Shown here piece after piece: positions 1 to 21,645 of a DNA stretch of 21,645 bases. The stretch is from Bugula neritina (taxonomy: Eukaryota; Animalia; Bryozoa). The first letter of the stretch is position 1, and each line of letters begins with the position of its first letter. The translations under genes were made by a program, and so were the position numbers. The notes under the pieces were generated by a model. The model ran no database searches. It was not told the origin of the DNA and saw nothing but the letters and a program-made list of their open reading frames with translations. The DNA is taken from assembly GCA_964035545.1 (NCBI GenBank), contig CAXIUT010000002.1, positions 1-21,645 of the forward strand. Reading direction: 5' to 3'.

Positions 1-87
1 CCCAACCCCAACCCCAACCCCAACCCCAACCCCAACCCCAACCCCAACCCCAACCCCAACCCCAACCCCAACCCCAACCCCAACCCC
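1..87. repeat. Left telomere, (CCCCAA)n
   Basis: About 14 perfect CCCCAA repeats at the window start. C4A2 is the telomere repeat known from Tetrahymena and related ciliates. Confidence 0.98.
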
Positions 88-184
88 GTAGATATAACAA
101 AAAGGGCTGGATTAAGTTATTTGGGTTCATAACTAAAATTGATAATATGATAGTATTAATTATTTTAATTTTGAATTCTGAGCT

Positions 185-1012
185 ATGAAAGAGTATAGTG
201 ATCCTACATTGGAAAATGTTGGTTCTTAAATAGAAATATTCCCTGGGAGAGGACAATTCATTCTCTCTCAAAGTTTTCTTTAAAGTTCTATTTTCAACCA
301 AAAAAGTATTCTTCCTCAAACTCCTTTCTCTGATCTGAAATAAGTTTCCCTCAAGAACCCATTTGGATTTAATCTTTAAGATCAAACTGAGCACTGTCCT
401 ACCAATGACAACCTAACTCTGTCTCCTCAACATAATGATCCTGTTTTTGGAGTTTTAGATCTAAAAAGAGGAACTTCTTAGCAATGGAATCTATAAAAAG
501 AAGACTAGGTCTTTGAAATGAATCAGATGGCTTAATATAGAAGCATTCCTCTTCATGAAATTGAATTATCTTATCATACTCAAAATGACAATGAAATCAA
601 CATGGACTAAAGCTGTAAGAGCAGTCTTAAAACAAGTCATCAGAATATAAAGGAATCAACAAAGAATGTGACAAAAAATATGGGAAAATTATTATTAAAA
701 TGGATATGGGTCAACCAATAAAGGTTAAAATAAGCTTTATAATATGAGTAAAAATAATGGTAATAATTTATTTAGAAGATAAAAATTTGGAAAAAATAAA
801 ACAACCTTACTCGTAGATTTCTAACTTCAAAATGGCATGGACCTCGTCCTGAACATAGAATATTCAGAATACTGAGTCATAGATTTTTTAGGGCAGAATG
901 TCGAGGGGCCATAATGTCATCTAGTATTGAGAATAAGTCAATGCATATTGATAAAATAGATAAGTATCTTGCTGGAGTGAGTAAGGCGTCAGGTTTGGAT
1001 TCTCTTAATTGA
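185..1012 (+). CDS. Uncharacterised 275-aa protein with a low-complexity N-half and a basic C-terminal domain (KNVTKNMGKLLLKWI...FRILSHRFFR...)
   Basis: ATG185 to TGA1010-1012 is open with TAR=Glu and needs no intron. The C-terminal domain resembles, from memory only, an expanded family of hypothetical proteins in oligohymenophorean ciliates. Confidence 0.75.
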
Positions 1013-1054
1013 TTTTTATATTTTATTTTAGAGATTATTCGATACATATTGAGA

Positions 1055-2312
1055 TCAGGCTGGAAATACACCTATACTATCCAAATAAAGTTAAGCATCA
1101 GCTGCTATGGCCTATATGCCACGGTTGGCATCGATTTTCTTTAGTTTTGATTGTTTTTAGTAGAATTAGACCACTGGTTTTGTCTGGTCGTTGAAGGTTG
1201 TTAGTCTTTTAACGATAGATTCTTAGTTATCGTCAGATCGACCACTAGTTTTACCTCTTTCTAGCAATCTTCTTTTGAGTTCTTCTTATTCACAATCAAA
1301 GAAAAGAACAGCTTTCAGGTTAATCCATTTGGCCATAACTTTTTCCCATACATCCATGTTTTATTGTCCTCTAGGAAATCCATCGAGTAGGTATCTTCCA
1401 CCATAGTTATTTCTTTATATTTTTTATTGGATAATTCTAACCATTAAATCACTACTGATCAAATTACCTTATTTGATAACAGCATCAATTTATCTACCTA
1501 ATTTAGACCCAGTTTTGACTTAGGCTCTTAGAAGGTCTCCAGTTGATAAATGTTAAAATTTATATTTTTTAACTAAGATGTCACATTGACTATATATTGA
1601 TACAAATACGTGCCTTTTCCTGATCCTGGGCCGCCTAGGACAAAGATCATTTATGCTGGTGATGGAGGTCTAACATTGACTTAATTTAATTTGTTAGTTA
1701 ATTCTTAGTAAATTTGTTATCTATTTTTGCTGGCATCAATTTTAATACAATTGTTCTTTTTTTAAAAGGATTCAACGATAGGCATGGTTTAGTTAGTAAA
1801 AGTATCTAGTCTTTTTTGGATAGTTTATGGATTATCATCAGCTCTTCCACTTGTTTTAGCCCGTTACATTATTCTATCAATAAGAATTTGGGAAGGACAG
1901 TCGAAATAGATCAAATTACGTACTACAACATCGTCTCCGAGTTGTTTTTAGAACTAATCCCAATTTTATTTATTTCTAGGGAAACCATCAAACAGGTACC
2001 TTCTGTTGCCATCTATTTGAATAGCATTTTTAAGTAACTTAACTACTAATTAGGAAGGAAGGAGTTTTCCTTACTTAATATAGTTTTATATGGTTTATGC
2101 CATTTAGCCTCCTTTTTATTTTTAGTCTCGAAGAAGATCACCAGTGGATAAGTGTCTGAATTTATAATTTTTAATTAGATTTTATGCCTGTGTTCCTTTT
2201 CCACTTCCTGGTCCTCCTAAAAGGAAAAAGATGTGAGGCTTTGTCAGTACTCCATGACTGTTTTGTTAATTCTATTTTGATAACTAAGTACACTGGACTA
2301 GGCGCACCCCAT
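1055..2312 (-). CDS. Adenylate kinase / UMP-CMP kinase family protein with two tandem kinase domains, 405 aa, N-terminal MGCAESS acylation motif
   Basis: Two copies each of LGGPGSGKGTQ, HLSTGDLLR, DGFPR and SGR(A/S)DDN. Frame is restored by 20-nt introns at 2272-2291 and 1590-1609. Stop TGA at 1057-1055. Confidence 0.93.
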
Positions 2313-2408
2313 TGTTGTTAATTATATATCTTAAACTACTCAATTAAATATGGCTTTTAAGTAAACTATCAAATAATAGTTCAAATATTAAAAATAATAA
2401 CTTCAATA

Positions 2409-2442
2409 CTAGTTTTATTGTCTAGTTTTATTGTCTAGTTTT
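2409..2442. repeat. Short intergenic tandem repeat, CTAGTTTTATTGT x2.6
   Basis: 13-bp unit read directly from the sequence. Confidence 0.8.
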
Positions 2443-2527
2443 GAGAGGTATTTACTATTGTTGTTTATCAATTGTTTGATATTTAGGTAATAAATGTAAG
2501 GTAAAGTAGAATGACAAAAAGAGGATA

Positions 2528-3343
2528 TCATTTATTTTTACCAAGAAGAGATGATATTTTATTTTGAAGACTATCTATCTTATTTATATTTTTATTATAC
2601 TTCTATATCCAAGTATTACTTCCCTCAACTTTTAAATCATTTTTCCTTATATCTAAAGACATATCTAGACATTTCTATTCCCTTGCCCTGCCCTTAGGCG
2701 GTATATATAGCTCTCTTTCTACGTTCTTTTACTACCTCTTCATTCCATATCTATCATTTTGAGAACCAACTTTTATATTTTAGATATTGTCGATTCCTAT
2801 CAATGATAGTTCATGCTGTCTGCTTTTGGTTTCAGTTGATACTTTGTTGAAACTGGTTAGGTTCATGGTTTTATTTTTGAGTGGAGATGTTTTGATATGA
2901 AGAGGAGCTGTTCCTTTAATGGGCGATTTATTCCTATTTTAGTTTAGTATCTTGATAGGACTGCTTGTCATCTCACTATGTCTGTAAACCGAATCATTCT
3001 TATCTTTATGTCTATATATTTTATCCTGCTCTTCTCTTCGGTAGTGATCAAACTGGTATTTTCCTTTAGAACTAATATCACTATTATCTCTTTGCGAAAG
3101 AGGGAGAGATTATTAGTTGTATTTACTTCTAAGAGGAGAAGGTTTATGGTTGTAGGAGAGGTGAAAGGGAGAAGGTTCTGGGTTGAGTTGAAGGGTGAGG
3201 TTAGGATGGAATGATTATCTGTGGGTGGTGAGTGGACGGGTGGGCGAGATGGTGGGAGTAGGGGTTTGTGTTCTAGATGGTTATGCGTATCCGTATTTAT
3301 GTTTGATTTGGTATAATCTTTGACAGAACTTCGGGTCTTTCAT
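2528..3343 (-). CDS. Uncharacterised 271-aa Ser/Pro/Lys-rich protein
   Basis: ATG3343 to TGA2530-2528 open under TAR=Glu (MKDPKFCQRLYQIKHKYG...IDSLQNKISSLLGKNK*). No domain recognised. Confidence 0.7.
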
Positions 3344-3428
3344 GGATGTTCTAAGAGTATCAATAATTATTAATAAAGTAAACTTACTTTTTATTATTAT
3401 TATTGAATCAATTCATAAAAAGAGTATA

Positions 3429-4046
3429 TCAAGGATATTCCATCAATTTAGTACTTATGTTTTAGAATATTTAGTCCATCCGATCGATTTCTTCATCTCT
3501 CTATGCTCTAATTCTTTACAGTTATTTTATTTTCTATTTCTAGATGTTATCTTACTTTATCAATATTCTATTCTTGATGTCCTAATTAAACTATTCTTTG
3601 CTGATAGTTGTTTTACTGTTCTATTTCTAGTTCTCGATATTTTATCTACTTTATCTATTTTAGGTGTAAATATCTCTTATTTTGGCCAGTTTATCATTTT
3701 TATAGTTATTTTGACTATGTTTGTCTATTTTTATTTTGATATCGTTGACCATTTAATCAAGCTTATCTTTCTATCTATATTATTTTATTATATTAGCTAC
3801 TTATTTGTCACATCCTTTTTGTTCATTAGATTTATTACTATTATTCTAAAGTAGTTAGATATATTTTTAAGCTTCTCTTAATGATTTCTATAGATATTTA
3901 TTTTTAGATATTAGTTCTTGAATGGTCATATCTTTTATTTTAAGTTAGCTGGTTGTTTTGAGATATGCTTGCGATATTATAGTAAATTGTTTTTCGAGGA
4001 TAGATAGTTTAGAATTGTATATATTTTATAAGGAGTTGTTATTCAT
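3429..4046 (-). CDS. Uncharacterised 205-aa coiled-coil protein
   Basis: ATG4046 to TGA3431-3429 open under TAR=Glu, with E/K/I/L-rich heptad-like composition. Confidence 0.7.
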
Positions 4047-4105
4047 TTTCTATTGTTCAATTAATTATAGAAATATTATCTTAGAATATCATTCAGAAGA
4101 ATATT

Positions 4106-5128
4106 ATGAACAAAAAGCACTTATAGCAAAATATGAACAAAAAGCACTTCTAGCAAAACATCAAATCATCCTACTAAATCTACTAACTCAGTCATTTATA
4201 ACAAATTCATTAGCAACTAGACTAATCTCTATGCTAGAGTATTTAGTCATTAAAATTGCAACTAAAACTCAATTAAATTCAGTCATAAAAATCAACATCA
4301 AATAGTACCAATTAGATAGATGAGATACTATCAAAGCAGTTGCAGATTCGTGGAATATTTACATAGGAGTTACTGAATAGCCAGATTCTGGTATAAAAAA
4401 ATAAATAGATGATGTAGATGATAGTAAATTACTAGAAAAGGATAAAAGATTTAAGAACGATACTTATCCATAAATAATCAGATTTACATTTATTTTAGGA
4501 AGACTATAGTAGAAACAATCTTCCTAAACAGGATAATTTATACAAGATAAATAATTATTCTGCATTGACTAGCAACATGTTGAAACATTTAAGATAAAAA
4601 AAGAAAATATAAGTATAAATACAATCACTAACCCATGCTCTTCAATATTTCTATCCCAAAAAAATGTCCATCCCTAAAAACATCAAATAAAATAGATCTT
4701 TAAGTAAAAGAGAACCCTTTAAGTATAGATAGTAAGGATTGAGATAGAATGTTAGTATCGTGCAGAAAGACAGTTTGGTTGATAGAATGATGAAGATGAT
4801 AGAGATATAGAACAAGAGATAGTTGGAGATAGTCAATTAGGTCAAATAGCTATAGAAATAGATTGGTATTTAGTAATAGAAAAGGAAATAAAGGAAAGGG
4901 TATTATAGTAGATTGTAGGCTTAGAGGAAGATGAAGATGATGTTGAAATAAGATAGAAGATATCAAAAGATAAATAAATAATAAAAAACAACATAAAAAA
5001 GATAACTACTAATCGACAATATAAATATAATAAAACCCTAAATGTTATAAATATAGTTAAAATTGTCAAATGATAAGTAAAAGATAAATATGAGAAATCG
5101 TAAAAGCAAATAGTTCAAATAAAACTGA
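4106..5128 (+). CDS. Uncharacterised 340-aa coiled-coil protein
   Basis: ATG4106 to TGA5126-5128 open under TAR=Glu. Head-to-head with the previous gene (59 bp between ATGs). The first 27 bp are tandemly duplicated. Confidence 0.72.
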
Positions 5129-5210
5129 TCATATTCTATCACTAATAAACTGATCATATTCTATCATTAATAATACTATTGATCATATTCTATCACTAAT
5201 AATACTATTG
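5125..5210. repeat. Short (about 3 copies) diverged version of the 29-bp repeat, starting at the stop codon of the 4106-5128 gene
   Basis: TGATCATATTCTATCA(C/T)TAATAA occurs three times. Confidence 0.9.
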
Positions 5211-5246
5211 CTCATTTATTATTAAATACTATTAAATTATCAGATA

Positions 5247-5310
5247 TTGGTTGGGGTTGGGGTTGGGGTTGGGGTTGGGGTTGGGGTTGGGGTTGGGGTT
5301 GGGGTTGGGT
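5247..5310 (+). repeat. Internal telomeric tract 1, (TTGGGG) about 10 copies
   Basis: TTGG-(TTGGGG)n-TTGGG followed by TCAT. Confidence 0.97.
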
Positions 5311-7532
5311 CATTAATAATAGTATTGATTTTATTCTATCATTAATAATACTATTGATTTTATTTTATCATTACTAATAGTATTGATCATATTCTATCAT
5401 TAATAATACTATTGATTTTATTCTATCATTAATAATAGTATTGATTTTATTCTATCATTAATAATACTATTGATTTTATTTTATCATTACTAATAGTATT
5501 GATTTTATTCTATTATTAATAATACTATTGATTTTATTCTATCATTAATAATACTATTGATTTTATTTTATCATTACTAATAGTATTGATCATATTCTAT
5601 CATTAATAATACTATTGATTTTATTTTATCATTAATAATAGTATTGATTTTATTCTATCATTAATAATACTATTGATTTTATTTTATCATTACTAATAGT
5701 ATTGATCATATTCTATCATTAATAATACTATTGATTTTATTTTATCATTAATAATAGTATTGATTTTATTCTATCATTAATAATACTATTGATTTTATTT
5801 TATCATTACTAATAGTATTGATTTTATTCTATCATTAATAATACTATTGATTTTATTTTATCATTACTAATAGTATTGATCATATTCTATCATTAATAAT
5901 ACTATTGATTTTATTCTATCATTAATAATACTATTGATTTTATTTTATCATTACTAATAGTATTGATCATATTCTATCATTAATAATACTATTGATTTTA
6001 TTTTATCATTACTAATAGTATTGATCATATTCTATCATTAATAATACTATTGATTTTATTTTATCATTACTAATAGTATTGATTTTATTCTATCATTAAT
6101 AATACTATTGATTTTATTCTATCATTAATAATACTATTGATTTTATTTTATCATTACTAATAGTATTGATCATATTCTATCATTAATAATACTATTGATT
6201 TTATTCTATCATTAATAATAGTATTGATTTTATTCTATCATTAATAATAGTATTGATTTTATTCTATCATTAATAATACTATTGATTTTATTCTATCATT
6301 AATAATACTATTGATTTTATTTTATCATTACTAATAGTATTGATCATATTCTATCATTAATAATACTATTGATTTTATTCTATCATTAATAATAGTATTG
6401 ATTTTATTCTATCATTAATAATACTATTGATTTTATTTTATCATTACTAATAGTATTGATCATATTCTATCATTAATAATACTATTGATTTTATTTTATC
6501 ATTACTAATAGTATTGATCATATTCTATCATTAATAATACTATTGATTTTATTCTATCATTAATAATAGTATTGATTTTATTCTATCATTAATAATACTA
6601 TTGATTTTATTTTATCATTACTAATAGTATTGATCATATTCTATCATTAATAATACTATTGATTTTATTCTATCATTAATAATAGTATTGATTTTATTCT
6701 ATCATTAATAATAGTATTGATTTTATTCTATCATTAATAATACTATTGATTTTATTTTATCATTACTAATAGTATTGATCATATTCTATCATTAATAATA
6801 CTATTGATTTTATTCTATCATTAATAATAGTATTGATTTTATTCTATCATTAATAATAGTATTGATTTTATTCTATCATTAATAATACTATTGATTTTAT
6901 TTTATCATTACTAATAGTATTGATCATATTCTATCATTAATAATACTATTGATTTTATTCTATCATTAATAATAGTATTGATTTTATTTTATCATTACTA
7001 ATAGTATTGATTTTATTCTATCATTAATAATAGTATTGATTTTATTCTATCATTAATAATACTATTGATTTTATTTTATCATTACTAATAGTATTGATCA
7101 TATTCTATCATTAATAATACTATTGATTTTATTTTATCATTACTAATAGTATTGATCATATTCTATCATTAATAATACTATTGATTTTATTCTATCATTA
7201 ATAATACTATTGATTTTATTTTATCATTACTAATAGTATTGATCATATTCTATCATTAATAATACTATTGATTTTATTCTATCATTAATAATACTATTGA
7301 TTTTATTTTATCATTACTAATAGTATTGATCATATTCTATCATTAATAATACTATTGATTTTATTCTATCATTAATAATACTATTGATTTTATTCTATCA
7401 TTACTAATAGTATTGATCATATTCTATCATTAATAATACTATTGATTTTATTCTATCATTAATAATACTATTGATTTTATTCTATCATTACTAATAGTAT
7501 TGATCATATTCTATCATTAATAATACTATTGA
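5310..7532. repeat. 29-bp minisatellite, 76 units plus 19 bp: TCATTA(A/C)TAATA(C/G)TATTGA-T(TT/CA)TATT(C/T)TA
   Basis: Length 2223 = 76x29 + 19, so there are no net indels. Only a few recurrent variants occur. Non-coding: the period is not a multiple of 3 and TGA is present on both strands. Confidence 0.97.
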
Positions 7533-7560
7533 TCTTTTATAACTAAATACTATCAAATTA

Positions 7561-9737
7561 TCAGATATTGTCTATCAAGTCATCGACGTTGTAGTCTATA
7601 TGTAGCACCCAGTATTTATTTTATTCCAGGGATTCTATTTATACTATATTATCTTTGTTTTGTTTGTTTTATTTATCTGATTATATTACTAAAGAGTTTT
7701 ATATTTGTTTTTGCAGCTAATCGATGAAATCATGATCTTATATATTTTATTCAGGTTAAGGTTCATACTATGAAGTGGGAGTTTTTCCTAGAAAGTTTAA
7801 GTGGTTGGCTAGTATTTATTATTTTTGGAACATGACTTAATGTTTTACATCTTTTCCTGAAGCATAACCAGCCAAAGCCTTTCTAGAATTATAAATCTCT
7901 TTCTCAAGAAATGACTATATAATATCATCAAACTATTAATCTATATATCTTTATTACTACTTTAGATGTACTCCTTAATAGTTGCATTATTAGCACTATG
8001 TTCTCTCAATTTGATGCATAGATTAATTAGATGAGCAATGTATCCTTTTCTTTTGTGATATAAAATAGATTTTTATTGAATTACTTTATCTTCTTGCACT
8101 TATTGTTTTATCCAGTTAAGTAGGATGTGATCTTTTAGCAATGATTTTAAAAATATAGAATTTTATGGTTCTACTAATGCGATGTCTATTATTTTCATTA
8201 TTTAGTTATGTAATATATTGTTATTTTAATACTGTTTTATTAGGTTAAATAGAAGAGGAAATAAATTGTTATTATTTGATACTATATGTTTACTATTTAA
8301 TATATTTTATTTTATTAGGCACTTTAGGATTTATATTATCTTTAATCTGCCCATCCCAAATCTATTGTGTTCTTTATTACTTATTTACAATTTTTTACAA
8401 CTACTATCAATAAACTATGTTAGCAGTTTCTCAAATTTATTCATTGTATTTTGATCTTATGGAATAACCAATGGTACGTTTATTAAATATGTCAATAATA
8501 CTGGAGCATTGTATATTGATACTGATTAGTTATCACTCACGATGTTATTTATTATTGATGTTATAATATCAAATTAAAAAAACTCATTTTTTATTTATTT
8601 GTTTTATGATTTTAAATTTGATATTTTTTAAATTATTTAGCAGATATATGATGATATGTTACTCATTTACTGTATTATGTTATAGATACTGCAACATCAG
8701 AAGGAGTCTCTAGTTTATTCAATAACTTTTTAAATAATTATACTCTTTCTGAAAGATAATCTAGTGATTATGTGGTTATAATTTTGATAAGAAAATCACC
8801 AACTGATCGAGATTAAATATGTTTTATGATGTTTTATGTCATTTGCTACTTAAATATATATTTATTAAGCTAATTATCATACTAGGTACCTAGGTCGATC
8901 GTTTGCCCATAAAATATGCTAGTATTTTGCAAATATAACCTGCTAAAGTATAATTTAATTATCCTTCGAAATATGCAAGTAGGGATTATATTAATGGTGG
9001 TACTTCTTTTTGTATTATTTTTTATATTTTTCTTTTCTATTTTATTATCTTTGTTTGTTTCTTCTTCATAGACTTTTATTTATCTTCTTCTTTTATCTAT
9101 CCTTTTAAAGATTCAACTTTTTATGATTATTTCTTTCCTTCTTTTTCAATATTAGGTTAAGGAATAGTCTCATTCTACTTTTACACTTATTTTTAAATCT
9201 TTGTTTAAATCTCTTTTCCTTAACTAACTTATTATTTGACTTATTATTTGATATTTATTGTTTAGACTTTAACTATTTATTTCTTTTCTTTGTTTGAAGA
9301 TCCTTTTTATGCTTTATTGGGCAAATCTTCTTAAATTTCTACTTCTAATTAATAATCTTCTTAAATAACGCTTTTTTATTAAATTTCTAAAGGTTTATCA
9401 GGCAAGAAGAACTAAATAGCTGTTGGATTATCAATACAAAGTAGTTAACATGCACTAAAAGGATATCTAAATATTCAAAAAGGTTTATACTTGTAGCCTC
9501 TATTTTTATTATCCTAAGTTCCTAAGACAGTTAAATACTAAACTAGCTCTTTGAACTTGTCATAGGTCATGCTTGATCAATAAAAAGGTACAAATTAATG
9601 ATTTTAAGATTGTTACTTTTGTACTAGCCAATGAAAGAATCCTAATCTAAGAGTCTAGCCATGGACATTTGAGGTTGATCAAGCAGTTAGTTCAAAACTG
9701 AGTTGTTAGTTCTGAATAAATTGGTAAAGTTGAACAT
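7561..9737 (-). CDS. SAPS-domain protein (SIT4-associated protein / PP6 regulatory subunit), 690 aa
   Basis: Family motifs RLLDEDSFIGEYKSNNLKIINF, YKYPFSACELL, LNYTLAGYICKI, FGMGRLKIIEIL, YENNNILHNEI and RKGYIAHL. Introns at 9572-9591 (20 nt), 9467-9490 (24), 8870-8889 (20), 8670-8689 (20) and 7941-7960 (20). A long E/K-rich insert lies at about 9000-9380. Confidence 0.88.
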
Positions 9738-9864
9738 TCTTTTCCCTCCTATCAATTATCTAATATCTATAGTATTTGATATATTCTTATCATATCATAT
9801 TTAATCTTTAATATAACTAATCTGTAAAATAGATAATAAGTGATAATGATGATTGGGTTAGAGA

Positions 9865-11280
9865 TCATTCTTCGATGTCTTCGGGCAAGTTCTACAAATC
9901 CAATTGTTTTCCTGTTATATCAGTGTACATTTTCAATACATTTTCGGTTTAGTTTTCAAAGTGTGATGTGGCATCAAAAGTTTCAGAAATAAAAAGACCA
10001 TCAGCTGATTTAGTTGAAGGAACATATCGTTCAGTAATAGTAATGAATTTTTCCTTAACCTTTCCGCAAAGTTCAAGAGCACTTTGGATTTCTTGTTCTG
10101 GGTTGTTTGTTTCTACAGTTGTGCTGATGATAGCCACAAAGTATCCTTGTTTGCTGATACTGTGAACTGATGACACCATCATGATGTATACATCTATATA
10201 AAGGGATAAGTACCATTTTTTCTTTTGATTTGTCTTTGAGGTAAAATGATTTGCACAGAAGGGATGTTTTCAGTTCCTGGAATTGGATGATCAAGAATGC
10301 AGATACATCTGATGATCTTCTCAACGAATTTAACTCTATCTTTAAGACCACAACGCAAAGCATATGTAGGATCGCAAATAACTGTCTTGCATTTAGCTAC
10401 TCCTTGAGGACCTTTCACTCCCACGACCTTTCCATCTTCATAAAGAATTTCATTGATATCAGTATTAAGCATGAATGTTCCTCCATTTACAGCACTGATT
10501 CTTGAAAATCCTTCAGGGATACCTCCCAGACCGAAAATTGGATAAATGAATGGAGAGGGATTGTTGCCCATTGAGTCCATATAAAGTTGAATCTTTTTGA
10601 TGAGTTCGATAGCTGGTCTATGAAGGAAACTATCGTTGGTGTAAAGAGCAACTGCATGACCAATGAAATCAATAGTGTTATCTTCCAATCCGTATTTTTA
10701 GAGCATTTCTTTTCCAGGTCTATCCATTTTAATTCCTTCATAAGTCTTAGGTTTTCCTTCCTCGAAGTTTTGGACAGCTTCCAAGAATTTTTGGCATCTT
10801 CTCTTTTCAAGAAGGCCCATAAGATCTGAAGAAAGGGCCTACTTGGGAGTGACAGGCACTTTGAACACTTTCATTCCTCCTTTCGAGAAGAATCCTGGTT
10901 CTTTGAATTGAAGGACATAGGTTCCGTCAATGGCTAAATAACTAAAAAAATACGTTTCCATTCGAGATATCTAGAGACTCTAGTTTTGAGGAGTATTTTA
11001 ACAAGTTTTCCTCCGTACATGATGTACTTGGGGATAAGGTCAATGTTCCAATCTCTGTTATGTCCTAGTTCTTTGTTGGGATCTTCTTTATCTCTGAAGA
11101 GTTTCCAGAGGTTGGTGAGGTTGACTGAGGCTCCTTCTCCTCCATAGAAGTTATTTCTGTCGATGTGTAAAACTTTTTTGCCTGGATAGAAGAAGCTATA
11201 CCTTCTTGTGAGAGCAGGCCTGAGAGGATGCACTCACTGAGTCCTGTTCCACAAACTACAACGTCGTAGGTTTAGTCCAT
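9865..11280 (-). CDS. GDI1: Rab GDP dissociation inhibitor, 451 aa
   Basis: [89 protein letters not shown] and FDATSHFE. Three 20-nt introns at 11182-11201, 10934-10953 and 10194-10213. Confidence 0.97.
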
Positions 11281-11417
11281 AATCGATCTAAATAATGTTA
11301 ATTGAATATTTTTAAAGCCCCCGATTTAAATAGCATATCAATAATATATCTAATACCATCTAAGCTATAAAATATAATTCATTTAGGTTAACTATCTTAT
11401 TAAATTCAAGACCTCAA

Positions 11418-14245
11418 TCAAATTCTTCTAACTGGATCCAAGATGCTCTTCCTCATCTCCTAGACACTCATTTCTCTCTCTTCTAGTCTTCTTCTTAAAG
11501 CCTAAATTTCCAAGGCCATCAAGATGAACTTCATGTTGGCAGCTTCTTCTTTTTTATCCATATTGATGTTGTCAGCATATTTTAGTCTCATCTTTTTAAC
11601 ATCTTCATCATAAGCTTTGTTTTCTTTGGTCAATCTATCTATTTAAGCGCCTAGAATATGAATTCTTCTGGCATAGTCTTGATACTCTTCAATTTGTTTG
11701 GCCATATTTCGAGATTATTGCTCGCTTCTTTGCACTTATGCTAAAATCCTGTTGAAATCATTGGTTATTTGTCCAATTCTATCATAAACAAATAGCATAC
11801 TTGTTTTAGAGGTTGCTGATTTTGTTGATAAGCATATCGATTTAGCTATTTTTTGTTTGAACTTTGAATTGAAGTTATTTATGCTTTTATACCATCTATT
11901 GGAACTCTCTTGATTTGTTTCTGCTAGTAATTGCTCCTTCTTGATTTAATCTTTCGATTTCGCAACTGAGGACTATTATTTTGCAGGCGAATTCGTTTGA
12001 GATGGTTTTTTATTTTTCTAGGTCTTGTTATTGAGTGCGTAGACGTTTTTCGTAGCCTTCCAAATCTGCCATTAAAGCAACTAGATGATTCTAAATATGT
12101 TGAGATGATACTTGTTGTTCTTGCATGGTGATTTCTATTTAATTTTTTTTTCTAACCTCAGGCTACAACCTTGAATACTGCATTCTTAATTCTTAATATT
12201 ATGAATTTTTAGTTCTTATCATGTTATTTAATTTTTATTTTTCTTGATTATTTTTAAAAAGTCCATTCTAAAACTATCTAGACTTGTTATCTAATTATCT
12301 ATATTTATTTTGCCAGTTATCGATCTATCTCTTGAGATTGTTGTTACCATCTTGCATCTTAGCTATGACTTGCTAGTTCTAGTTCATCTTTACCTCATAG
12401 TTTTTGTAGTAGTTAATTTTGCTGTAAAGTTCTAACTTTTATTGTTCTAAGGCACCTATTTATCTATTTCTATCTTTGAGTAGATCATTTAATTTATCAA
12501 GTTCAGTAGTAAGTAATCCAATTTTATTCTAATAATCTCTTACTTTTATCTATATGCTTTTGTATTATGATAGTGTTCCTTCAACTTTGTTATATCTGAT
12601 TTTGTAGTCATTGAGTTATCCTGCTTGATTTTTCAGTAATCCATTTAATCTCTAAACTTATGATGTTAAACTGCTATTATGTCTCTCTACATCTTTGTAT
12701 TGATTTTAATTTCTTTTGTAGCCGTTGATATCTCCTTCCATTTTGGATATGAGGTATTTGAATTATTAATTTTGTTTAACTTGTGTATTACATTTATCTT
12801 ATAATCCTCTTTTATCTTTCTTCAATATTTATAAATCATCAAGTTTATTCTATATTTGATTGTATCTTCCTTTCCACTCTTATATCTCAGTCAATCTTGA
12901 TTTTAGTATGCCGTTGATTCTATCATTTTCTATTTTTAAATTATTTATTTTAGATTAGTAATTGAATAATTCATTCTATAAATTCTTGAACTTAGATAGC
13001 TAGTTTTATCTATCAACTACCTTTCTCTTCCACTGATCGATCTAGTCCATCTTGGTCCGTAATATGTTATTTAACCTTTATAACTAGCTTGAAGCCAGTG
13101 CTAGTTTTTATGTCAGTTCTTATATATATAATTTCATTTAATTAGCTCTCATCATGTCTTACTAGAGTCGACTGGCTTGTGTTTTCCATTCTTCTGCTTA
13201 TTTTATTTTTTTTTATAAATTATTTTTCAATATTTTATTTTATGACTACCACTCTGTTTGCATTTTAAGTTGTTGATTTAATTTGAATTATTTTTGTCTA
13301 TTGCTACTGAGTTAGTCGTCTTTTTATCTTAAGAGTTAATTAAGTCTGACTAGTTATTGGTTGAGTCTTCTTAATTTATTTTAATTATCATTGATAATAT
13401 TTTAATAGTTTTTAAGTTAGATGATAGTGATTTAATACTTTTGGCATTTTTGTTTATAATCTTCTACATCTCTATTTCTATTGTCAAGCAACTATCTACA
13501 TTTTCTTATCTAGTTCTATAAACTTGATCTCTCATTTTGATGTCTGATTGCCATCTATCTTATCTATCTGTCAATCATTGACTTCCTCTGACTCTACATC
13601 ATTGATCTCAAATCGTCTAACTATTTTATTTTGCTTTTCTATGATGCTTGGTATCTAGATTTCCACTTCTAGATCTATTGAGTTAGGTCGGCATTTTTTG
13701 TTTTTTATGATTAGTATCGTTGGCGGATAGTAAAATCTACATCGTTTAGTTTATTTTTCAACATCTAGTTCTAGTGATATAGAGTTTCACAAATCTTATT
13801 TAACTTCTCATATTCTTCACGATACTCGTATATTTCTTTCTATTGAGTAAAACATTTCTCAGTCAACTATCTTATCTGAACCTAGTAGTTTGAAGAATTA
13901 AACAGTTGTCGCTAGTACTACTTCAGCTTCACTCTTAGAACCTATACTTCTCTAGATAACCTTTAAATTTAAATAGTCTGGAATACTACAATAAACTGAA
14001 TATTGTCCCCCAGGTTTATCTTCTTGTGGTTTGGTAAGTTTTGAATACGAGATCTATTTTATCAAGTTTGTACTTTCGGAGGTCATCTCCATAGGCGATG
14101 GATTCGTTGAGCATGGGTGTTGAGATAAAGGAACGACTGACGTTAGTATTATTGCCAACTCCTGAACCTAGATGGTAGAGTTATTACCTGTGTTGAAGAC
14201 GTAAGATTGTCTAAGAACGGTATCTCTAAAACCTGATTGACTCAT
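11418..14245 (-). CDS. Large coiled-coil protein (about 921 aa) with recurring EIERL(N) and ENKIGLL-type motifs, probably cytoskeletal or cortical
   Basis: Long open frame under TAR=Glu with introns at 14168-14187 (20 nt), 14054-14073 (20) and 11779-11800 (22). Motifs TIEIERL, EVERLNGLLK, YENKIGLLTTELDKLN and CEIERLNQ. Function is inferred. Confidence 0.82.
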
Positions 14246-14283
14246 ACTCTCTGCAGAATCAATTTAATTTTAACTTAAATTAC

Positions 14284-14376
14284 TTGGTGGGGTTGGGGTT
14301 GGGGTTGGGGTTGGGGTTGGGGTTGGGGTTGGGGTTGGGGTTGGGGTTGGGGTTGGGGTTGGGGTTGGGGTTGGGT
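14284..14376 (+). repeat. Internal telomeric tract 2, (TTGGGG) about 15 copies
   Basis: TTGG-TGGGG-(TTGGGG)n-TTGGG followed by TCAT. Same orientation as tract 1 and as the right telomere. Confidence 0.97.
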
Positions 14377-14383
14377 CATATTT

Positions 14384-14414
14384 TCAAAGTATCAAAGTAT
14401 CAAGTATCAAAGTA
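14384..14414. repeat. TCAAAGTA x4 (one 7-bp copy) just after internal telomere 2
   Basis: Read directly from the sequence. Confidence 0.9.
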
Positions 14415-14726
14415 TTCGAATAATTATCTTTGAGAAATATATGTATTATAGCTAGCTAATATTCTTTTTGGCTATAATTAGCTGGATAAAGGTGTAATAG
14501 TTGGTGATTTAATGAATTAGTGAATGGATGTTTAGTAAGAATATTATTATGAAGGACTATAATAAATTTTATATGAGCAGGCATAAGTTTGTTGCAACTA
14601 ACAGAGATAACTTTGCTTTTCAGAAGAGAGAGTAAAGTTTATCATTAAGAAAAAATCAATAAAGACATTCTCAATAACTAAAAGTTGATAAAAAAGTACC
14701 ACATAAATAAATACTTCTACCCATCG

Positions 14727-16271
<1,545 letters not shown>

Positions 16272-16280
16272 TAATAATGA

Positions 16281-16619
16281 TCATTCGGGTTTTACATATC
16301 TCTTTTTATTGAATAAAAAATAAATTTATTTAGCTATTGTCTTTTATGCATAGAAGTCCATGATGAAAATAACTAAGTTTTGTTAATTTAAGTCAAGAAA
16401 TTAATTTACTTAAGGTGATTATTATTTTTATTTATGGGCTTGATTTTTTTTATTTTGAGATAAATGGGAAAGGAAAGATGAGGGTGATTTGTTTTGAGGT
16501 TGTTATGAGATTTCTTATAGGAATTAAATTTTGATTGTTTATTTGAGTGGAGATGTTTTAAATGTTGAAAAAGGTAGTTTAAGGTTATAATCGATAATCT
16601 ATTTGAGTAAAAATGCCAT
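16281..16619 (-). CDS. Small hypothetical protein, about 112 aa
   Basis: ATG16619 to TGA16283-16281 is open, strand composition is coding-like, and the stop has the same TGA-T context as the other genes. Start uncertain (another in-frame ATG at 16682). Confidence 0.5.
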
Positions 16620-17837
16620 TTAAGCTTCGAATAATAAAAAAAATTCAAAAGTGTATAGCCAATCAGCAGAAGACGATATCATCGACTGAAGAAATACCTT
16701 AAAAAAGGAAAAACAACGATGTTGTCAATCGACAAAAGTAAATGTTATTTTATATTAGACCAAAACAAAGAAAAATATTTTCAAAAACACCTAATCTCTA
16801 TCAACTGATCCTCAGTAAGGAACATTTATCAGAAAAACATGTGTTTAACTTTTTCAATGTAAGTTTTAGATTTTTATAGTTGTTTACCATTAATTAACGC
16901 GCACTCAGACAAGAAGATTGGTAAGAAGCATACATCAAAAGTCACTTCTATACTAAAACTCTCAGAAAAGTAGAGGTTAGACCCAAAAATATAGTCATGA
17001 GTTTCTCTGATTCTGATTTATAGTTTCCTCCCATGTATAACAATCACCATATAGAGAATATATAGTTAATAGATTTAGAAGTTTTGGAGATGAAAAGTTT
17101 GCCCGATTGGCTACACTGATGTAAGAGGCAACTAAAAAAATAAAATAACTGGCTTCTTTCGAGGGGAAGAATGACAAGGATATTAGTTCTGATATGGTTG
17201 AGCCATATGTCGAATCTTTGGGGAATAAGATGTATTGTTGTAAGAGCTAAAGCAAGATGTATTTGTCTAATAGTATGCTGGAGATGCTAGAATATGATCC
17301 TGAAAAGGTGGCTCTATAAATTATCAAATACCGGGTTTGTCTATACGAGTAACTAATCTGATATTTTAGAGGTTGTACTACTGAACACTACTATGATGTG
17401 ATTGTTAAAGTGTTTTAAAACGTTAATAACCTCATCAACCTTCTGCTTGATAAAATTAGTCTAGAAACTTTCCTGGATTCATCTATGCTGAGGTTCAGAG
17501 ACACCCTCATCACCAAAAATAACGTACTTCCTCTTCTATTTAGAAAAAGGTGCATGGAAAGGTGAGATGTGGAATGCCGAATCCCTTTATAACTATATTT
17601 TAGGTTTAGGAAATCATAAATATCAGTTAATAATTTTAGTCATCTCCCTATTTCAAAGGAGTTTATAAACAATAAATCGCTAAATATAGATAAAAAGTAA
17701 GATAGTCTCAAATAATATCTTTGAAAAATATAACAGACTTGCCTCAAAATTGTTTTCCATAGAATAAGTATAAAACAGCCAACTATATGGAACTTGAATA
17801 ATTAGTTAAAAAGGAGTAATAAGAAGATCAATCTTGA
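16613..17837 (+). CDS. Uncharacterised protein of about 387 aa, possibly with a degenerate PAS-like segment
   Basis: Frame maintained by introns at 17035-17054 (20 nt), 17349-17369 (21, in-frame TGA) and 17524-17543 (20). Two further frame-neutral 21-nt candidates at 16738-16758 and 16859-16879. Start uncertain. The PAS guess rests only on YLSNSMLEMLEYDPEKV and LITKNNKKV. Confidence 0.62.
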
Positions 17838-17904
17838 TATTTTCTGATTGATTTTAGTATCAAATCATTATAACTATTTATATATATTACTAAGTAAAAT
17901 GAAA

Positions 17905-20900
17905 TCAATCGATGTTTTTTGGATTATTTGCACCTGATCTGCTCTTTATCAACTTCTAAAGATCTTGGCTCATTTGGCAAGGAGCTAAAGGTTAGAAAAG
18001 ACCCATATTTTATGGAATTTATCCCAATTTCCTTATTTTTTTGTATTTCAATGCTCTTCCTATAGCTATCAAATCTTCCTAAGGAGTAACTTTCCCTCTT
18101 CCAATCAATCTTTAGCTCATAATATCTAGTAGTTGTTCTTTATCAAAATCAGGAGGGTCTACAATATCCATAATATCGTCAATGAGTGACTGTTTGATGA
18201 TCTAATCAATCAGATATGATCTTTAGAGAGAAGGAGAGGCATTGATTTCAATTAGATGACAGTTGGTGTCTTAGTCTATCATGATATCATAGCCAAAGAG
18301 TTCGAAGGCAGCTGGAAAGGATGGAACTGAAATCGAGCACCCTAAAAGTGATTTGATAACAATTTAATGTACTTGTGACCATACTTTATTGAAGGAATAA
18401 TTCATTTTGGTGAGTTTATCTTTCAATGTTTTTAGTGATATTTTACTTCCTCCTGAAAAGTTAGCATTCTATTTGGTATTATTTCTATTAACTGAAAAAT
18501 TGGTTAAATGGATAAATGCATTTTTCATTTGCATGGGTTCTAGACTAAACTTCTAGGTACTTAACCGAGCGAATCCTTATTTATATACAAATGCTTACAA
18601 AGGATGAAAATTGGTTACAAGAACGTATATTCTCATATCGAATTTATAGCCATCAAGAAGCAGAGGATTAGGAATATATTTTTGCACTACAATGTTATCA
18701 GTGTAGTTAAGTTAAGCTAAGTTGCTTATAACTTTAATTCCTCTTCCTCTTGACTTACCGATAGGTTTCATTATCCAATAATTACGATCTTTATTCAACA
18801 TTTATTATTAATGAAATTTCATGCTGAATTGTGTGTATTATTTAGGGAGGTTAAATGTTATAGGTAGAAAATTAAACTGTATTTTAAGCATTTTTCTGAA
18901 GGCGTCTAAATTTTTATAGAGAAGATCTTTTCTAGATAGATTTTTATTGAAAGGAAAATGATTTATTCTTTGCCAGACTAGTAATTTACTAATATCGATA
19001 TCTGGTTTGCTCCAAGACCAGAAGAAATTCCAGCTAGATCTTAAAGAACAGCCATGAGGCAGCTATTTCCAACATTTTTTTCTTAAAAATCCAGTAGTAA
19101 TAATATCATAGACCTACTATTTACTCTTAACTACTCGATAATATCGATTATCTCCTTAGGCGAATTGTCCTTGAAGATTATTATTAAATATTTACAACCT
19201 TTCTACCATCTTTTTCAAATTTACATATGTGCTTTAAGTATGTAGTAGCAACTGTTTGGGATCGGTCATTTGGAGTTTACTTGATGAGTCGAAAGGTAAG
19301 AAAATGGCTGGTTGAAAGATAGACTTTTTATCTTTGAAGTGACTAACATGGGTTGTGAATATATTTACTAGATCTTTCATTATAGATGGGATATCTTGGA
19401 TAGCTTGATGTTATGCTTTGGTGTACATGACTGAAAATATATGGTTGAAAGTTGGATAGATCTAGAGATAGTTAAAGGTGGGAAGGACATACAAAGGTTT
19501 AGGTGGTTTAACTGCAGCTGCTGAAGCTCTTTTAGGTATTACTCTTTTCTTATGATCATCCACCATCTTTTTCAATTACTTTTTCTTTTTGTCGTAAATT
19601 TAGTCAATTATAGCATCTTCTACTTGATTTTACTTTTTTTATTATTATTTGCTAGGAGAATCAAAGGATTATATTGGTTATTAAATGGGAGAATATTTAT
19701 CAGAGATGCTATTTTTGATAGAATTTTTAATTTATATTTTATTTTTTTATTATAGCTATTTTTATTATTTTTGTCTTTTTATTTGAAATTAAGCTTATTC
19801 TCTAATATGGATCCAATATTATTCATTATAACATTTTTTAACCTTTATCTATTCCTTTTCATCTACCTTTTCTCTTTATTATTATAAAGCCAAAGGTTAT
19901 ATTTATTAGTTTTAAGGAGATAGATCTATGATTCTTCCAAAAGATTATTATTTTTTATTGAATTTCATTTCCTATATCTTTTATTCAAACTTTTATGTCT
20001 ATTTTTTTATTTGCTGTAACTATTCTATCTCAGATTTGTAAATATTCACATCCCCTTATTCTTTTACTTTATTAGTTTAAACTATTCTATTTGATATTAT
20101 CTTTTCTGAATGATAAATTACTTCTTTATTATCATCTTATTCCAGTTCTTTATTATCATCTTATTCCAGTTGTTTATTATCATCTTATTCCAGTTGATTT
20201 TCCTATTATTTTTATATTTTATGATTTAGAGTGATTTTTAAGTTAATTTATAATTTCTTTTCAGGTTACTAGTTTATAATTTACTATTTTATTTATTATT
20301 CTCTTTTAGTCTATTCAAAGACACTATCTCTTCTTCCCTTCACATCTTTCCCTTCAATCTATTATATCTATATTTGTTCTTTAATCTCTTCCACCTTCTC
20401 TTCCTTATGACCATACTAAATTAACATACCTTGCATTTAATTCTTGCTAATATCAATTAACTCCTAATGTTTATTCTATTTCTACCTTTCTATTTCTATT
20501 TTTGATTTCTATTATACTTTTTAATTCTTCAATATTTATCTTTTCTCTATTTCTTTTTTACTTTTCATTTCTTTCTGCTTCTCTTCTTGTTTGATCATTT
20601 CTACTAAATCTTTATTATTCATATGAGATTATTTCTTCTTTTCTGCTTTTTTCCCTTTTAGCTTCTCTACTACTTCTTGTCTTTTCTTTTCCATCTATTT
20701 CTAGTTTACTTTGTTGGGAGCCTAGCTAAGATGTTTATTGGATGTGATGGGGGAAGGTTGAGGTTTGCTTGATGTGTTTGATTTTATATTTTTGGTTGAG
20801 ATAGGTTGTAGAGTGGAAGGACTAACCACATGACCTCTATCATTGACAGTAAATCCTGGTTGTGGTTTAGGTGGTCCTCCTTTTTTAATAGTATAACAAC

Positions 20901-21507
20901 CTTATACTTTATTTTTATTTAAAGTATTCATAATAAAATCTTTCATTGAATTTTTAGATTTATTCTTATTATTACCTATTCCCATCTTGCGACTCCCTCC
21001 TAGCTTCTATTCACTTATCGTATATGCCTTATTATGACCTTATTTATCTCTTTAATTTATAACTGTCAGTGCATTTGATGTTGCTGCTGAGGTGACTGAA
21101 ATAGCATCATTTTTATCATAATATTCTTACTATTTCTTTTGATTTATATTTGACTTCGATATTGTTTTATTTTCTTAAGGAATTTATTGTTGGGCAATGG
21201 CTTATTATGCTAATTTAAGAAACTCATTATTAAAATCTGTAACTTTTTTGACATATGGATTATCAATTGCACATAGTTATTGAAAGAATTCTAATGTTTT
21301 TCTTTATTCTAGTTAGATATTGATATTTTAGATATATTAACTCAATTCTGTATTAGTCTGACTAGTATCAGCTGAGTTAGTTGTTCTATCTTCGAGTTTA
21401 GCTACTATTTTTCTAAGTTCCTATGAAGAATAATCGTAAATTTATTACAAAGAAGGCAGTTATCCAACTATCATTCTGATTTATTATTTTAAATTATATT
21501 CTATCAT
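17905..21507 (-). CDS. Tubulin-tyrosine ligase-like (TTLL) protein, probable polyglutamylase, 1200 aa with long charged N-terminal extension
   Basis: [82 protein letters not shown] and [10 protein letters not shown]. Single open frame ATG21507 to TGA17907-17905. Confidence 0.93.
20122..20193. repeat. 24-bp coding repeat x3 (LEEDDNK(Q/E)) within the TTLL N-terminal region
   Basis: TT(C/G)TTTATTATCATCTTATTCCAG x3. Confidence 0.9.
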
Positions 21508-21575
21508 ATATTATCAATCACGCAAACATCATTACTCAGAGATTTATCAAAATAAATTGTATACATATCATTCGA

Positions 21576-21645
21576 GGGGTTGGGGTTGGGGTTGGGGTTG
21601 GGGTTGGGGTTGGGGGTTGGGGTTGGGGTTGGGGTTGGGGTTGGG
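21576..21645. repeat. Right telomere, (GGGGTT)n
   Basis: About 11 repeats, with one G5 variant near 21612. Ends in TTGGG. Confidence 0.98.

Follow-up and report, generated by a model that had tools for sequence, protein, structure and literature searches.

Internal telomere tracts in a contig of a probable peritrich ciliate: likely assembly overlays at alternative telomere addition sites

Alternative chromosome fragmentation occurs in approximately 25% of the chromosomes of Oxytricha (PMC6937825), and alternative telomere addition sites (ATAS) have been described in Blepharisma (bioRxiv 10.1101/2021.12.14.471607). In both ciliates, the sites can be one-sided and can fall inside genes, and the same holds for the sites described here. 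In both, they are seen as soft-clipped telomeric read ends on a clean reference; in the present assembly, by contrast, the telomeric tail appears to have been written into the reference itself. For peritrichs, our literature search yielded no previous account of alternative telomere addition.

The window, i.e., the whole stretch of 21,645 nucleotides that was analysed, is an entire contig (G000:C11) with a telomere at each end, and it contains 44 matches to the telomere repeat compared with 0.04 expected by chance. Its features are listed in Table 1. The peritrich nuclear genetic code (table 30), in which UAA and UAG encode glutamate and UGA is the sole stop, fits the contig: TGA is the only stop of the long open frames, TAG occupies the invariant APE glutamate position of the kinase, and TAA and TAG stand at what we take to be glutamate positions of the UMP-CMP kinase, judged against human sequences.

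Table 1. Features of the window and their coordinates.
Feature	Position	Strand	Remarks
Left terminal telomere	1-87	-	C4A2 on +; starts CCCAAC; from the repeat scan
Segment A	88-5249		UMP-CMP/adenylate-kinase-like gene, ~1462-2200, minus (ADK match weak), and other open frames
Segment A, 3' end	final 130 bp of segment A		three 25-29-bp satellite units and one degenerate unit
Putative telomere addition site 1	5247-5249	+	genomic ...CAGATATTG, repeats then begin
Internal G4T2 tract 1	5250-5309	+	60 nt; ends TTGGG
Satellite array	5310-7533	+	29-bp unit, ~76 units, 58/87-bp higher order
Segment B, remainder	7534-14288
Rab GDP-dissociation-inhibitor gene	9949-11233	-	two 20-nt GT..AG introns; segment B
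Long coiled-coil open frame	11785-14061	-	segment B, which also has a probable ATG at 14245-14243
Putative telomere addition site 2	14284-14288	+	TTGGT, regular repeats next
Internal G4T2 tract 2	14289-14375	+	87 nt; ends TTGGG
Segment C	14376-21575		DYRK-like protein kinase gene, Pkinase matches 15279-15728, plus
Tubulin-tyrosine-ligase-like gene	17908-21513	-	segment C
Right terminal telomere	21576-21645	+	G4T2; ends TTGGG; single G5 slip at 21606-21617

The repeat scan confirmed that both internal tracts have their G-strand on the + strand and that no C4A2 tract faces them in the window. Both were found between genes, as judged from gene matches and open frames. TCAT directly follows each tract (5310-5313 and 14376-14379), each tract ends in TTGGG, and each is followed by a tandem repeat, i.e., the 29-bp satellite after tract 1 and an 8-bp repeat present four times at 14384-14415 after tract 2. 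In these respects, the original prediction had described the window correctly.

We propose that the assembler let the telomeric overhangs of short-form reads pass as overlap slop and overlaid them on the contig of the longer form. We assign a probability of approximately 0.8 to this reading as a whole, including the view that the contig corresponds to a single macronuclear chromosome of ~21.6 kb (A-B-C) from a peritrich ciliate. The tracts most likely mark real optional chromosome-end sites, and internal telomeres are probably absent from the real DNA molecules here. Chromosome A-B-C would also exist as shorter forms with telomeric ends at ~5249 and ~14288, which would be alternative telomere addition sites; the tract positions and the depth suggest such forms. 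Reads from these forms would carry a telomere tail of 60-120 nt beyond their last match to the longer form, and, with so short an unmatched tail, the assembler may have treated these reads as if they overlapped normally from end to end. It would then have kept the tail and dropped an equal number of bases from the next read. The expected outcome is a perfect tract of terminal length and in terminal register, placed between true neighbours and concealing an equal length of real sequence. Tract 1 would have been written over ~60 nt of true sequence (~two satellite units) and tract 2 over ~87-90 nt of true intergenic sequence. The assembler step responsible is one that we infer. Under the layout convention of miniasm and hifiasm, such an overlay would fall on the opposite strand (C4A2 on +), and the strand observed here did not match that rule.

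Equal-length substitution was observed directly in the sister scaffold C21, in which one region was assembled twice with flanks that are 99.7-100% identical. At one point, an 86-nt G4T2 tract in contig 1 of C21 corresponds to 89 nt of ordinary sequence in contig 2; at another, it is contig 2 that carries a tract (C4A2, 78 nt) and contig 1 that has ordinary sequence, also 78 nt long. The substitution is known from these two sites, both in C21. The 89-nt stretch of contig 2 comprises the ATG and the 30 initial codons of an open frame, and the RIIa-like domain of this frame extends beyond the far side of the tract. Because the two copies swap tract for ordinary sequence, the sequences on either side of a tract are genuinely adjacent, and the tract has replaced real sequence between them. 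By analogy, the two tracts of the window would have arisen in the same manner; no sister copy of segments A, B or C was found elsewhere in the assembly. Telomere repeats abutting ordinary sequence where a longer form continues were seen at three points in the comparison of C21 contig 1 with contig 2 (positions 1296, 2251 and 6480 of L037), and in L027 a copy of 97% identity continues beyond the site of a terminal telomere.

Next to tract 1, the same satellite family is present on both sides (5122-5215 and 5310-7533), and a search of the assembly found the 29-bp satellite in this contig alone. Extrapolated at this spacing, the starts of the units at 5193 and 5222 give further starts at 5251, 5280 and 5309, and the next one observed is at 5310; that is, the 29-nt phase holds across the tract to within 1 nt. 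A paralogous copy of site 1 at 7558-7566 reads CAGATATTG and continues with TCTATCAAG. The satellite on both sides and the C21 sister copies uphold the proposal that junction 1 joins neighbours. At site 2, the depth of segment B was 39 and 252 in two independent runs versus 15 and 115 for segment C, and B exceeded C 2.2-2.6-fold in X1 and X2 and equalled it in X3 at low depth, these values being contig word depths from other strains, ~1% different, in public runs kept as contigs. This drop from B to C in two runs, together with the C21 sister copies, suggests that the sites are optional chromosome ends, as had been proposed. In run X1, a contig extends ~70 letters past 14256, which fits 29 nt of flank followed by entry into a telomere. 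None of the indexed runs holds at least two of the three words sampled from the 60-nt stretch spanning junction 2, and X1-X4 are not among the runs holding any sampled word of this junction. A 27-mer taken from the beginning of segment C had no exact match in metagenome contigs, and an exact-protein look-up of Logan contigs gave no match.

The assembly contains ~400 internal telomere tracts, the polarity of which is fixed to the direction of the contig. Counted by contig strand genome-wide, 406 tract ends were forward and 83 reverse (353 versus 77 in a second count). Unscaffolded contigs with tracts carried them on the + strand in ~35 cases and on the - strand in 2, according to our reading of the listed places, and minus-strand tracts lay mostly within scaffolds with 200-N gaps. 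Mixed polarity within one unscaffolded contig was absent among the contigs read, and facing G4T2/C4A2 junctions numbered zero genome-wide. Since biology cannot set the strand of a contig, the + strand bias points away from biology. Moreover, "segments" of only 2, 14 and 19 nt separate some tract pairs, and some tract-to-tract joints are out of register; an overlay accounts for both. For three tiny "segments" (19, 89 and 183 nt), no parent turned up at any other place in the assembly. At the SDHA locus on C231, the FAD-binding domain is free of tracts.

The flanks of the tracts carried no signal. TCAT had been suggested as a shared border signal, and it followed 7 of ~430-490 tract ends genome-wide compared with ~4 expected (p ~0.10), i.e., it was not enriched. 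The first base after 73 true junctions (T32/A33/C8) was in line with base composition. A dedicated pathway joining capped ends to TCAT ends, as had been envisaged, therefore finds no footing in these counts. An apparent excess of T after the tract (64/100) was gone once telomere-to-telomere continuations were excluded. Inspection by eye of 37 natural ends and 16 right flanks revealed no shared motif of the kind expected, at a fixed distance from the addition site, for sequence-directed breakage of the Tetrahymena Cbs or Euplotes E-Cbs type. The irregular TTGGT start applies to tract 2. At tract 1, part of the TTGG (5247-5250) belongs to the genomic sequence, and regular repeats extend up to 5309. 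Among ~37 tract starts read the TTGGT start was limited to these two; it is not a general feature. The tracts do stop at TTGGG as the terminal telomeres do, but the same stop was found at 16/16 internal ends and at most terminal ends read; being universal, it is uninformative about these two sites in particular.

We considered whether the tracts could exist in somatic molecules, where telomerase would extend the left fragment at an optional break and end-joining would connect it to the uncapped downstream neighbour, so that some of the macronuclear copies would carry an interstitial telomere. De novo telomere addition is very active in ciliates, the flanks are true neighbours in C21 and around tract 1, and the length and register of the tracts are those of terminal telomeres, all of which suits such a process. 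However, it offers no reason why a tract should be as long as the sequence it replaces, as was found at the two sites open to this comparison (86/89 and 78/78). In addition, the right-hand edge of the tract in C21 sits 30 codons inside a gene, and polarity tracks the contig strand, which is arbitrary to biology. Equal healing of both break ends would also be expected, yet neither mixed-polarity contigs nor facing tracts were observed. We therefore consider this process unlikely, and we give slightly less credence to the more general idea that one-polarity interstitial tracts are a regular by-product of ciliate chromosome fragmentation and real in some macronuclear molecules. Tracts encoded in the germline, either as seeds at fragmentation sites or as telomere-bearing transposon ends as in the Tetrahymena micronucleus, would recall the internal C4A2 tracts that Cherry and Blackburn reportedly found in the Tetrahymena germline in 1985. 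They are very improbable here: the tracts are perfect and stop in terminal register, no flank is conserved, ordinary coding sequence lies at the same place in the C21 sister copy, and the contigs are telomere-capped and therefore somatic. The earlier option of pre-installed seeds is likewise unsupported, as the tracts stand in for ordinary sequence of the same length.

Chimeric long molecules or reads would arise if ligation in vitro, or polymerase run-off and template switching during amplification, linked small chromosomes that are unrelated, and if the assembler then retained the products as containers of shorter reads. Such chimeras would be in keeping with the embedded telomeres on record in chimeric Oxytricha PacBio reads (PMC6937825). 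Contigs of 17-25 kb correspond to about one long read, co-orientation is expected from one nascent strand, and every tested segment was single-copy in the assembly. Nevertheless, the joined pieces are neighbours (C21; junction 1) rather than random partners, and the tract substitutes for sequence instead of being inserted between complete units. Head-to-head junctions numbered zero although intact small chromosomes have telomeric ends only, and none of the junctions seen led into DNA of the second, far larger organism that the assembly contains. We regard such chimeras as improbable, more so than the somatic processes above, though less so than germline tracts. Of the proposed ligation, amplification or assembly chimeras, an assembly origin thus survives as the best reading, in the form of an overlay, and the joining of unrelated chromosomes does not. 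Four further ideas were rejected, namely run-off with template switching in whole-genome amplification, telomere ends acting as T-tailed adapters, G-quadruplex synapsis of ends, and reverse transcription of run-off transcripts; each predicts insertion, between complete or randomly cut units, and not equal-length substitution between neighbours.

If the overlay reading is true, every tract conceals 40-120 nt of real sequence and disrupts gene models. The tracts would at the same time show, as a ready map, where alternative telomere addition takes place in a small-chromosome, uncultured peritrich. For ciliates with nested chromosome forms, string-graph assembly would need telomere-trimmed reads or zero overhang tolerance.

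Vertebrate interstitial telomeric sequences reportedly derive from telomerase-mediated repair of double-strand breaks, as Nergadze et al. are said to have described. These insertions are inherited, are mostly short or decayed, and have cost the flanks little or no sequence. The tracts described here resemble them in that one-orientation repeats lie amid otherwise contiguous sequence, but differ from them in being perfect and of terminal length, in replacing an equal length of sequence and in following the contig strand. The chimeric PacBio reads of Oxytricha likewise combine a non-terminal telomere, a small-chromosome ciliate and long reads, and were treated as an artefact (PMC6937825). Head-to-head telomere junctions are also among the targets of the filters applied there, and those chimeras link different chromosomes; here, in contrast, there is no head-to-head junction, the flanks are neighbouring and an equal length is replaced. 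As at the ATAS of Oxytricha and Blepharisma, repeats would have been added straight onto ordinary sequence inside a longer form, giving nested forms, although the host in the present case is a peritrich (UAR = Glu) with G4T2 repeats. The underlying biology is best read as alternative telomere addition, already known from other ciliates.

The original prediction placed two G4T2 tracts on the + strand of the window, each followed by TCAT and a repeat, and its description of the tracts, their borders and the repeats after them was accurate. The window (21,645 bp) is contig C11 in its entirety. A search of the assembly found the 29-bp satellite confined to this contig. In the Rab GDI gene, the reading frame and conserved GDI sequence were regained once both 20-nt introns were removed; the other genes encode a DYRK-like kinase, a tubulin-tyrosine-ligase-like protein and an adenylate-kinase-like protein.

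Telomere tracts, repeats and introns located in the window
Feature	Position	Strand	Detail
Left terminal telomere	1-87		C4A2
Satellite outpost	5122-5249		three units and a degenerate unit, immediately before addition site 1
Tract 1, G4T2	regular repeats to 5309	+	TTGG 5247-5250 before, TCAT at 5310 after
29-bp satellite array	5310-7533		2.2 kb, 14-15% G+C
Degenerate unit as in the outpost	7534-7566		also terminates the big satellite array
Rab GDI introns, GT..AG	10182-10201, 10934-10953	minus	two, 20 nt each
Tract 2, G4T2	regular repeats 14289-14375	+	TTGGT 14284-14288 before, TCAT at 14376 after
8-bp repeat	from 14384		x4
Right terminal telomere	21576-21645		G4T2

Tract ends were counted genome-wide as (G4T2)3-GGG followed by a non-G base, giving 406 forward and 83 reverse occurrences. 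TCAT was not enriched after tract ends genome-wide (7 cases versus ~4 expected from composition, p ~0.10). Among the first 100 tract ends listed, 73 led into non-telomeric sequence, where the first base followed base composition (T32/A33/C8); the rest continued as telomere-like sequence, and four of these lay on the megabase contigs C1, C5 and C7. The apparent excess of T in an initial count (64/100) was due to telomere-to-telomere continuations. The TTGGG stop was present at all 16 internal tract ends read and at most contig ends, and is simply the ordinary telomere ending in these reads. A TTGGT-like start was seen at only these two of ~37 tract starts; the paralogous copy of site 1 at 7558-7566 reads CAGATATTG and then goes on. 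The TTGGT start is partly genomic. Given the TCAT count and the universal TTGGG stop, the shared borders do not act as a specific signal, and the same count speaks against the proposed pathway joining capped chromosome ends to TCAT ends.

Scaffold C21 of the same assembly contains two versions of the sequence lying right of an internal tract, one in each of two contigs flanking an N gap. Contig 1 consists of X, an 86-nt G4T2 tract, Y1 (4,064 nt), 78 nt of ordinary sequence, Y2 and a terminal telomere; contig 2 consists of a left telomere, X (99.9% identical), 89 nt of ordinary sequence, Y1 (99.7-100%), a 78-nt C4A2 tract and Y2 (99%). That is, each copy has a tract exactly at the other's ordinary sequence and of the same length (86 vs 89 and 78 vs 78 nt), indicating that the sequences flanking a tract are genuine neighbours, that the tract replaces real sequence and is not inserted, and that its right border, one telomere length past the addition site, is meaningless in itself. 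An open frame has its ATG and first 30 codons within the 89 nt of contig 2, and its RIIa-like domain extends into Y1; the family matches are weak (DUF5586 9e-6, RIIa 1.5e-3). The left telomere of contig 2 lies at position 1296 of L037, a stretch within C21, where contig 1 continues. Similarly, in stretch L027 (C15:24309-29435), two 97% identical 2.4-kb copies flank a 200-N gap; a terminal telomere closes the first, and the second continues past that point. The copies look like allelic contigs set side by side by the scaffolder. Telomeres located where a sister contig continues indicate that the chromosome forms are nested. Adjacent direct duplications in stretches L024 (C14:2444-9446; 3.5 kb, 96% identity) and L036 (C21:25152-27511; 1,180 nt, 100%) may be layout artefacts, with two alleles placed in succession or a single read used twice, and not real tandem duplications.

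We consider assembly overlay the best explanation of the internal tracts (probability about 0.8). Reads of a shorter form would carry a terminal telomere tail of 40-120 nt with no match in the longer form; to an overlap-layout assembler, so short an unmatched overhang would pass for an ordinary dovetail overlap. In writing the contig, it would use one read to its end and enter the next the same number of bases later. The predicted products would be equal-length substitutions, one polarity per walk direction in a fixed relation to the contig strand, tiny leftover 'segments' where two addition sites are close, and out-of-register telomere-to-telomere joints. The miniasm/hifiasm layout rule would place the overlay on the opposite strand.

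Within any one contig, the internal tracts had the same polarity. Manual reading of the listed places found them on + in ~35 unscaffolded contigs versus 2 on -, and minus-strand tracts lay mostly in larger scaffolds, where member contigs are split by 200-N gaps directly after telomeres. Contig strand is arbitrary relative to the cell; therefore, a polarity tied to it must stem from data processing, and we regard real molecules, healed and rejoined, as improbable. Genome-wide, there were zero facing G4T2/C4A2 junctions; some 'segments' between two tracts measured 2, 14 or 19 nt, and many tract-to-tract joints were one base out of register. Chimeric molecules of unrelated chromosomes appear somewhat less probable still, the tracts in C21 having true neighbours on both sides. 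Germline-encoded tracts are very unlikely, and the related idea of pre-installed telomere seeds found no support: the C21 tracts replace ordinary sequence of equal length. Of the earlier interpretation, optional end sites and neighbouring flanks were retained, whereas the joining pathway, the seeds and the TCAT signal were not.

A lone G3 unit, lying exactly 11 or 17 nt short of the tract end (TTGGG-TTGGGGTTGGG), is present in many tracts, both terminal and internal (for example C18:11-32, C32:11-32 and, in stretch L021, 9753-9763). Under overlay, it may mark a switch between reads with out-of-register telomeres; alternatively, it may be a real terminal structure. At C14:18552-18571, directly after an internal tract, A GACACTGTGGCCGAGCGGT resembles the 5' end of a tRNA gene (Ser/Leu type), whose upstream region would be hidden by the tract under overlay.

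The assembly holds no sister copy of segments A, B or C (left of tract 1, between the tracts and right of tract 2), and substitution in the window would follow by analogy with C21. The contig-private satellite is present on either side of tract 1. Carried forward from unit starts at 5193 and 5222, the satellite phase predicts starts at 5251, 5280 and 5309; the first one actually present after the tract is 5310, indicating that tract 1 stands for about two units. Segment B was 2.2-2.6x deeper than C in two independent runs, both of other strains and kept as contigs with the junction itself masked, and equally deep in a third run at low depth; the step in the first two would fit many molecules stopping at ~14288. 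No indexed run contained two or more of three sampled words spanning junction 2. Taken together, these data support, but do not prove, that tracts 1 and 2 arose by overlay.

Long open frames were seen in the window only with TGA as the sole stop. TAG is found where the APE motif of the kinase has its invariant Glu; in a UMP-CMP kinase compared with human sequences, TAA/TAG are found at Glu positions. Judged by these codons, the window uses the peritrich nuclear code. In the assembly (216 Mb, 321 contigs), the SDHA gene of the megabase-scale contigs C1-C9 is broken into many short exons and is free of in-frame UAR codons, whereas such codons do occur in the SDHA of small contig C231. A search of the assembly found no copy of window DNA on C1-C9. 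Eight public runs (X1-X8), from three studies and labelled as three organisms, contained DNA matching segments B and C at ~99% identity; this peritrich, or a close relative of it, lives alongside several hosts or cultures. The code, the SDHA contrast, the missing copy on C1-C9 and these runs together indicate that the ciliate is a cobiont in another organism's assembly. Mixed G4T2/G4T3/G3T3 tracts occur at or near megabase contig ends (C1:35637781-35637815, C5:422-509, C7:15810285-15810319). It is a possibility that C1-C9 are micronuclear chromosomes of some ciliate, although window DNA is absent from them.

Our literature search found no account of such addition sites in peritrichs; those underlying the tracts are of a known kind but may not have been recorded before in this group. 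Embedded telomeres in Oxytricha long reads were handled as artefacts (PMC6937825). For Oxytricha (PMC6937825) and Blepharisma (10.1101/2021.12.14.471607), it is established that telomeres can be added at alternative sites within longer chromosome forms.
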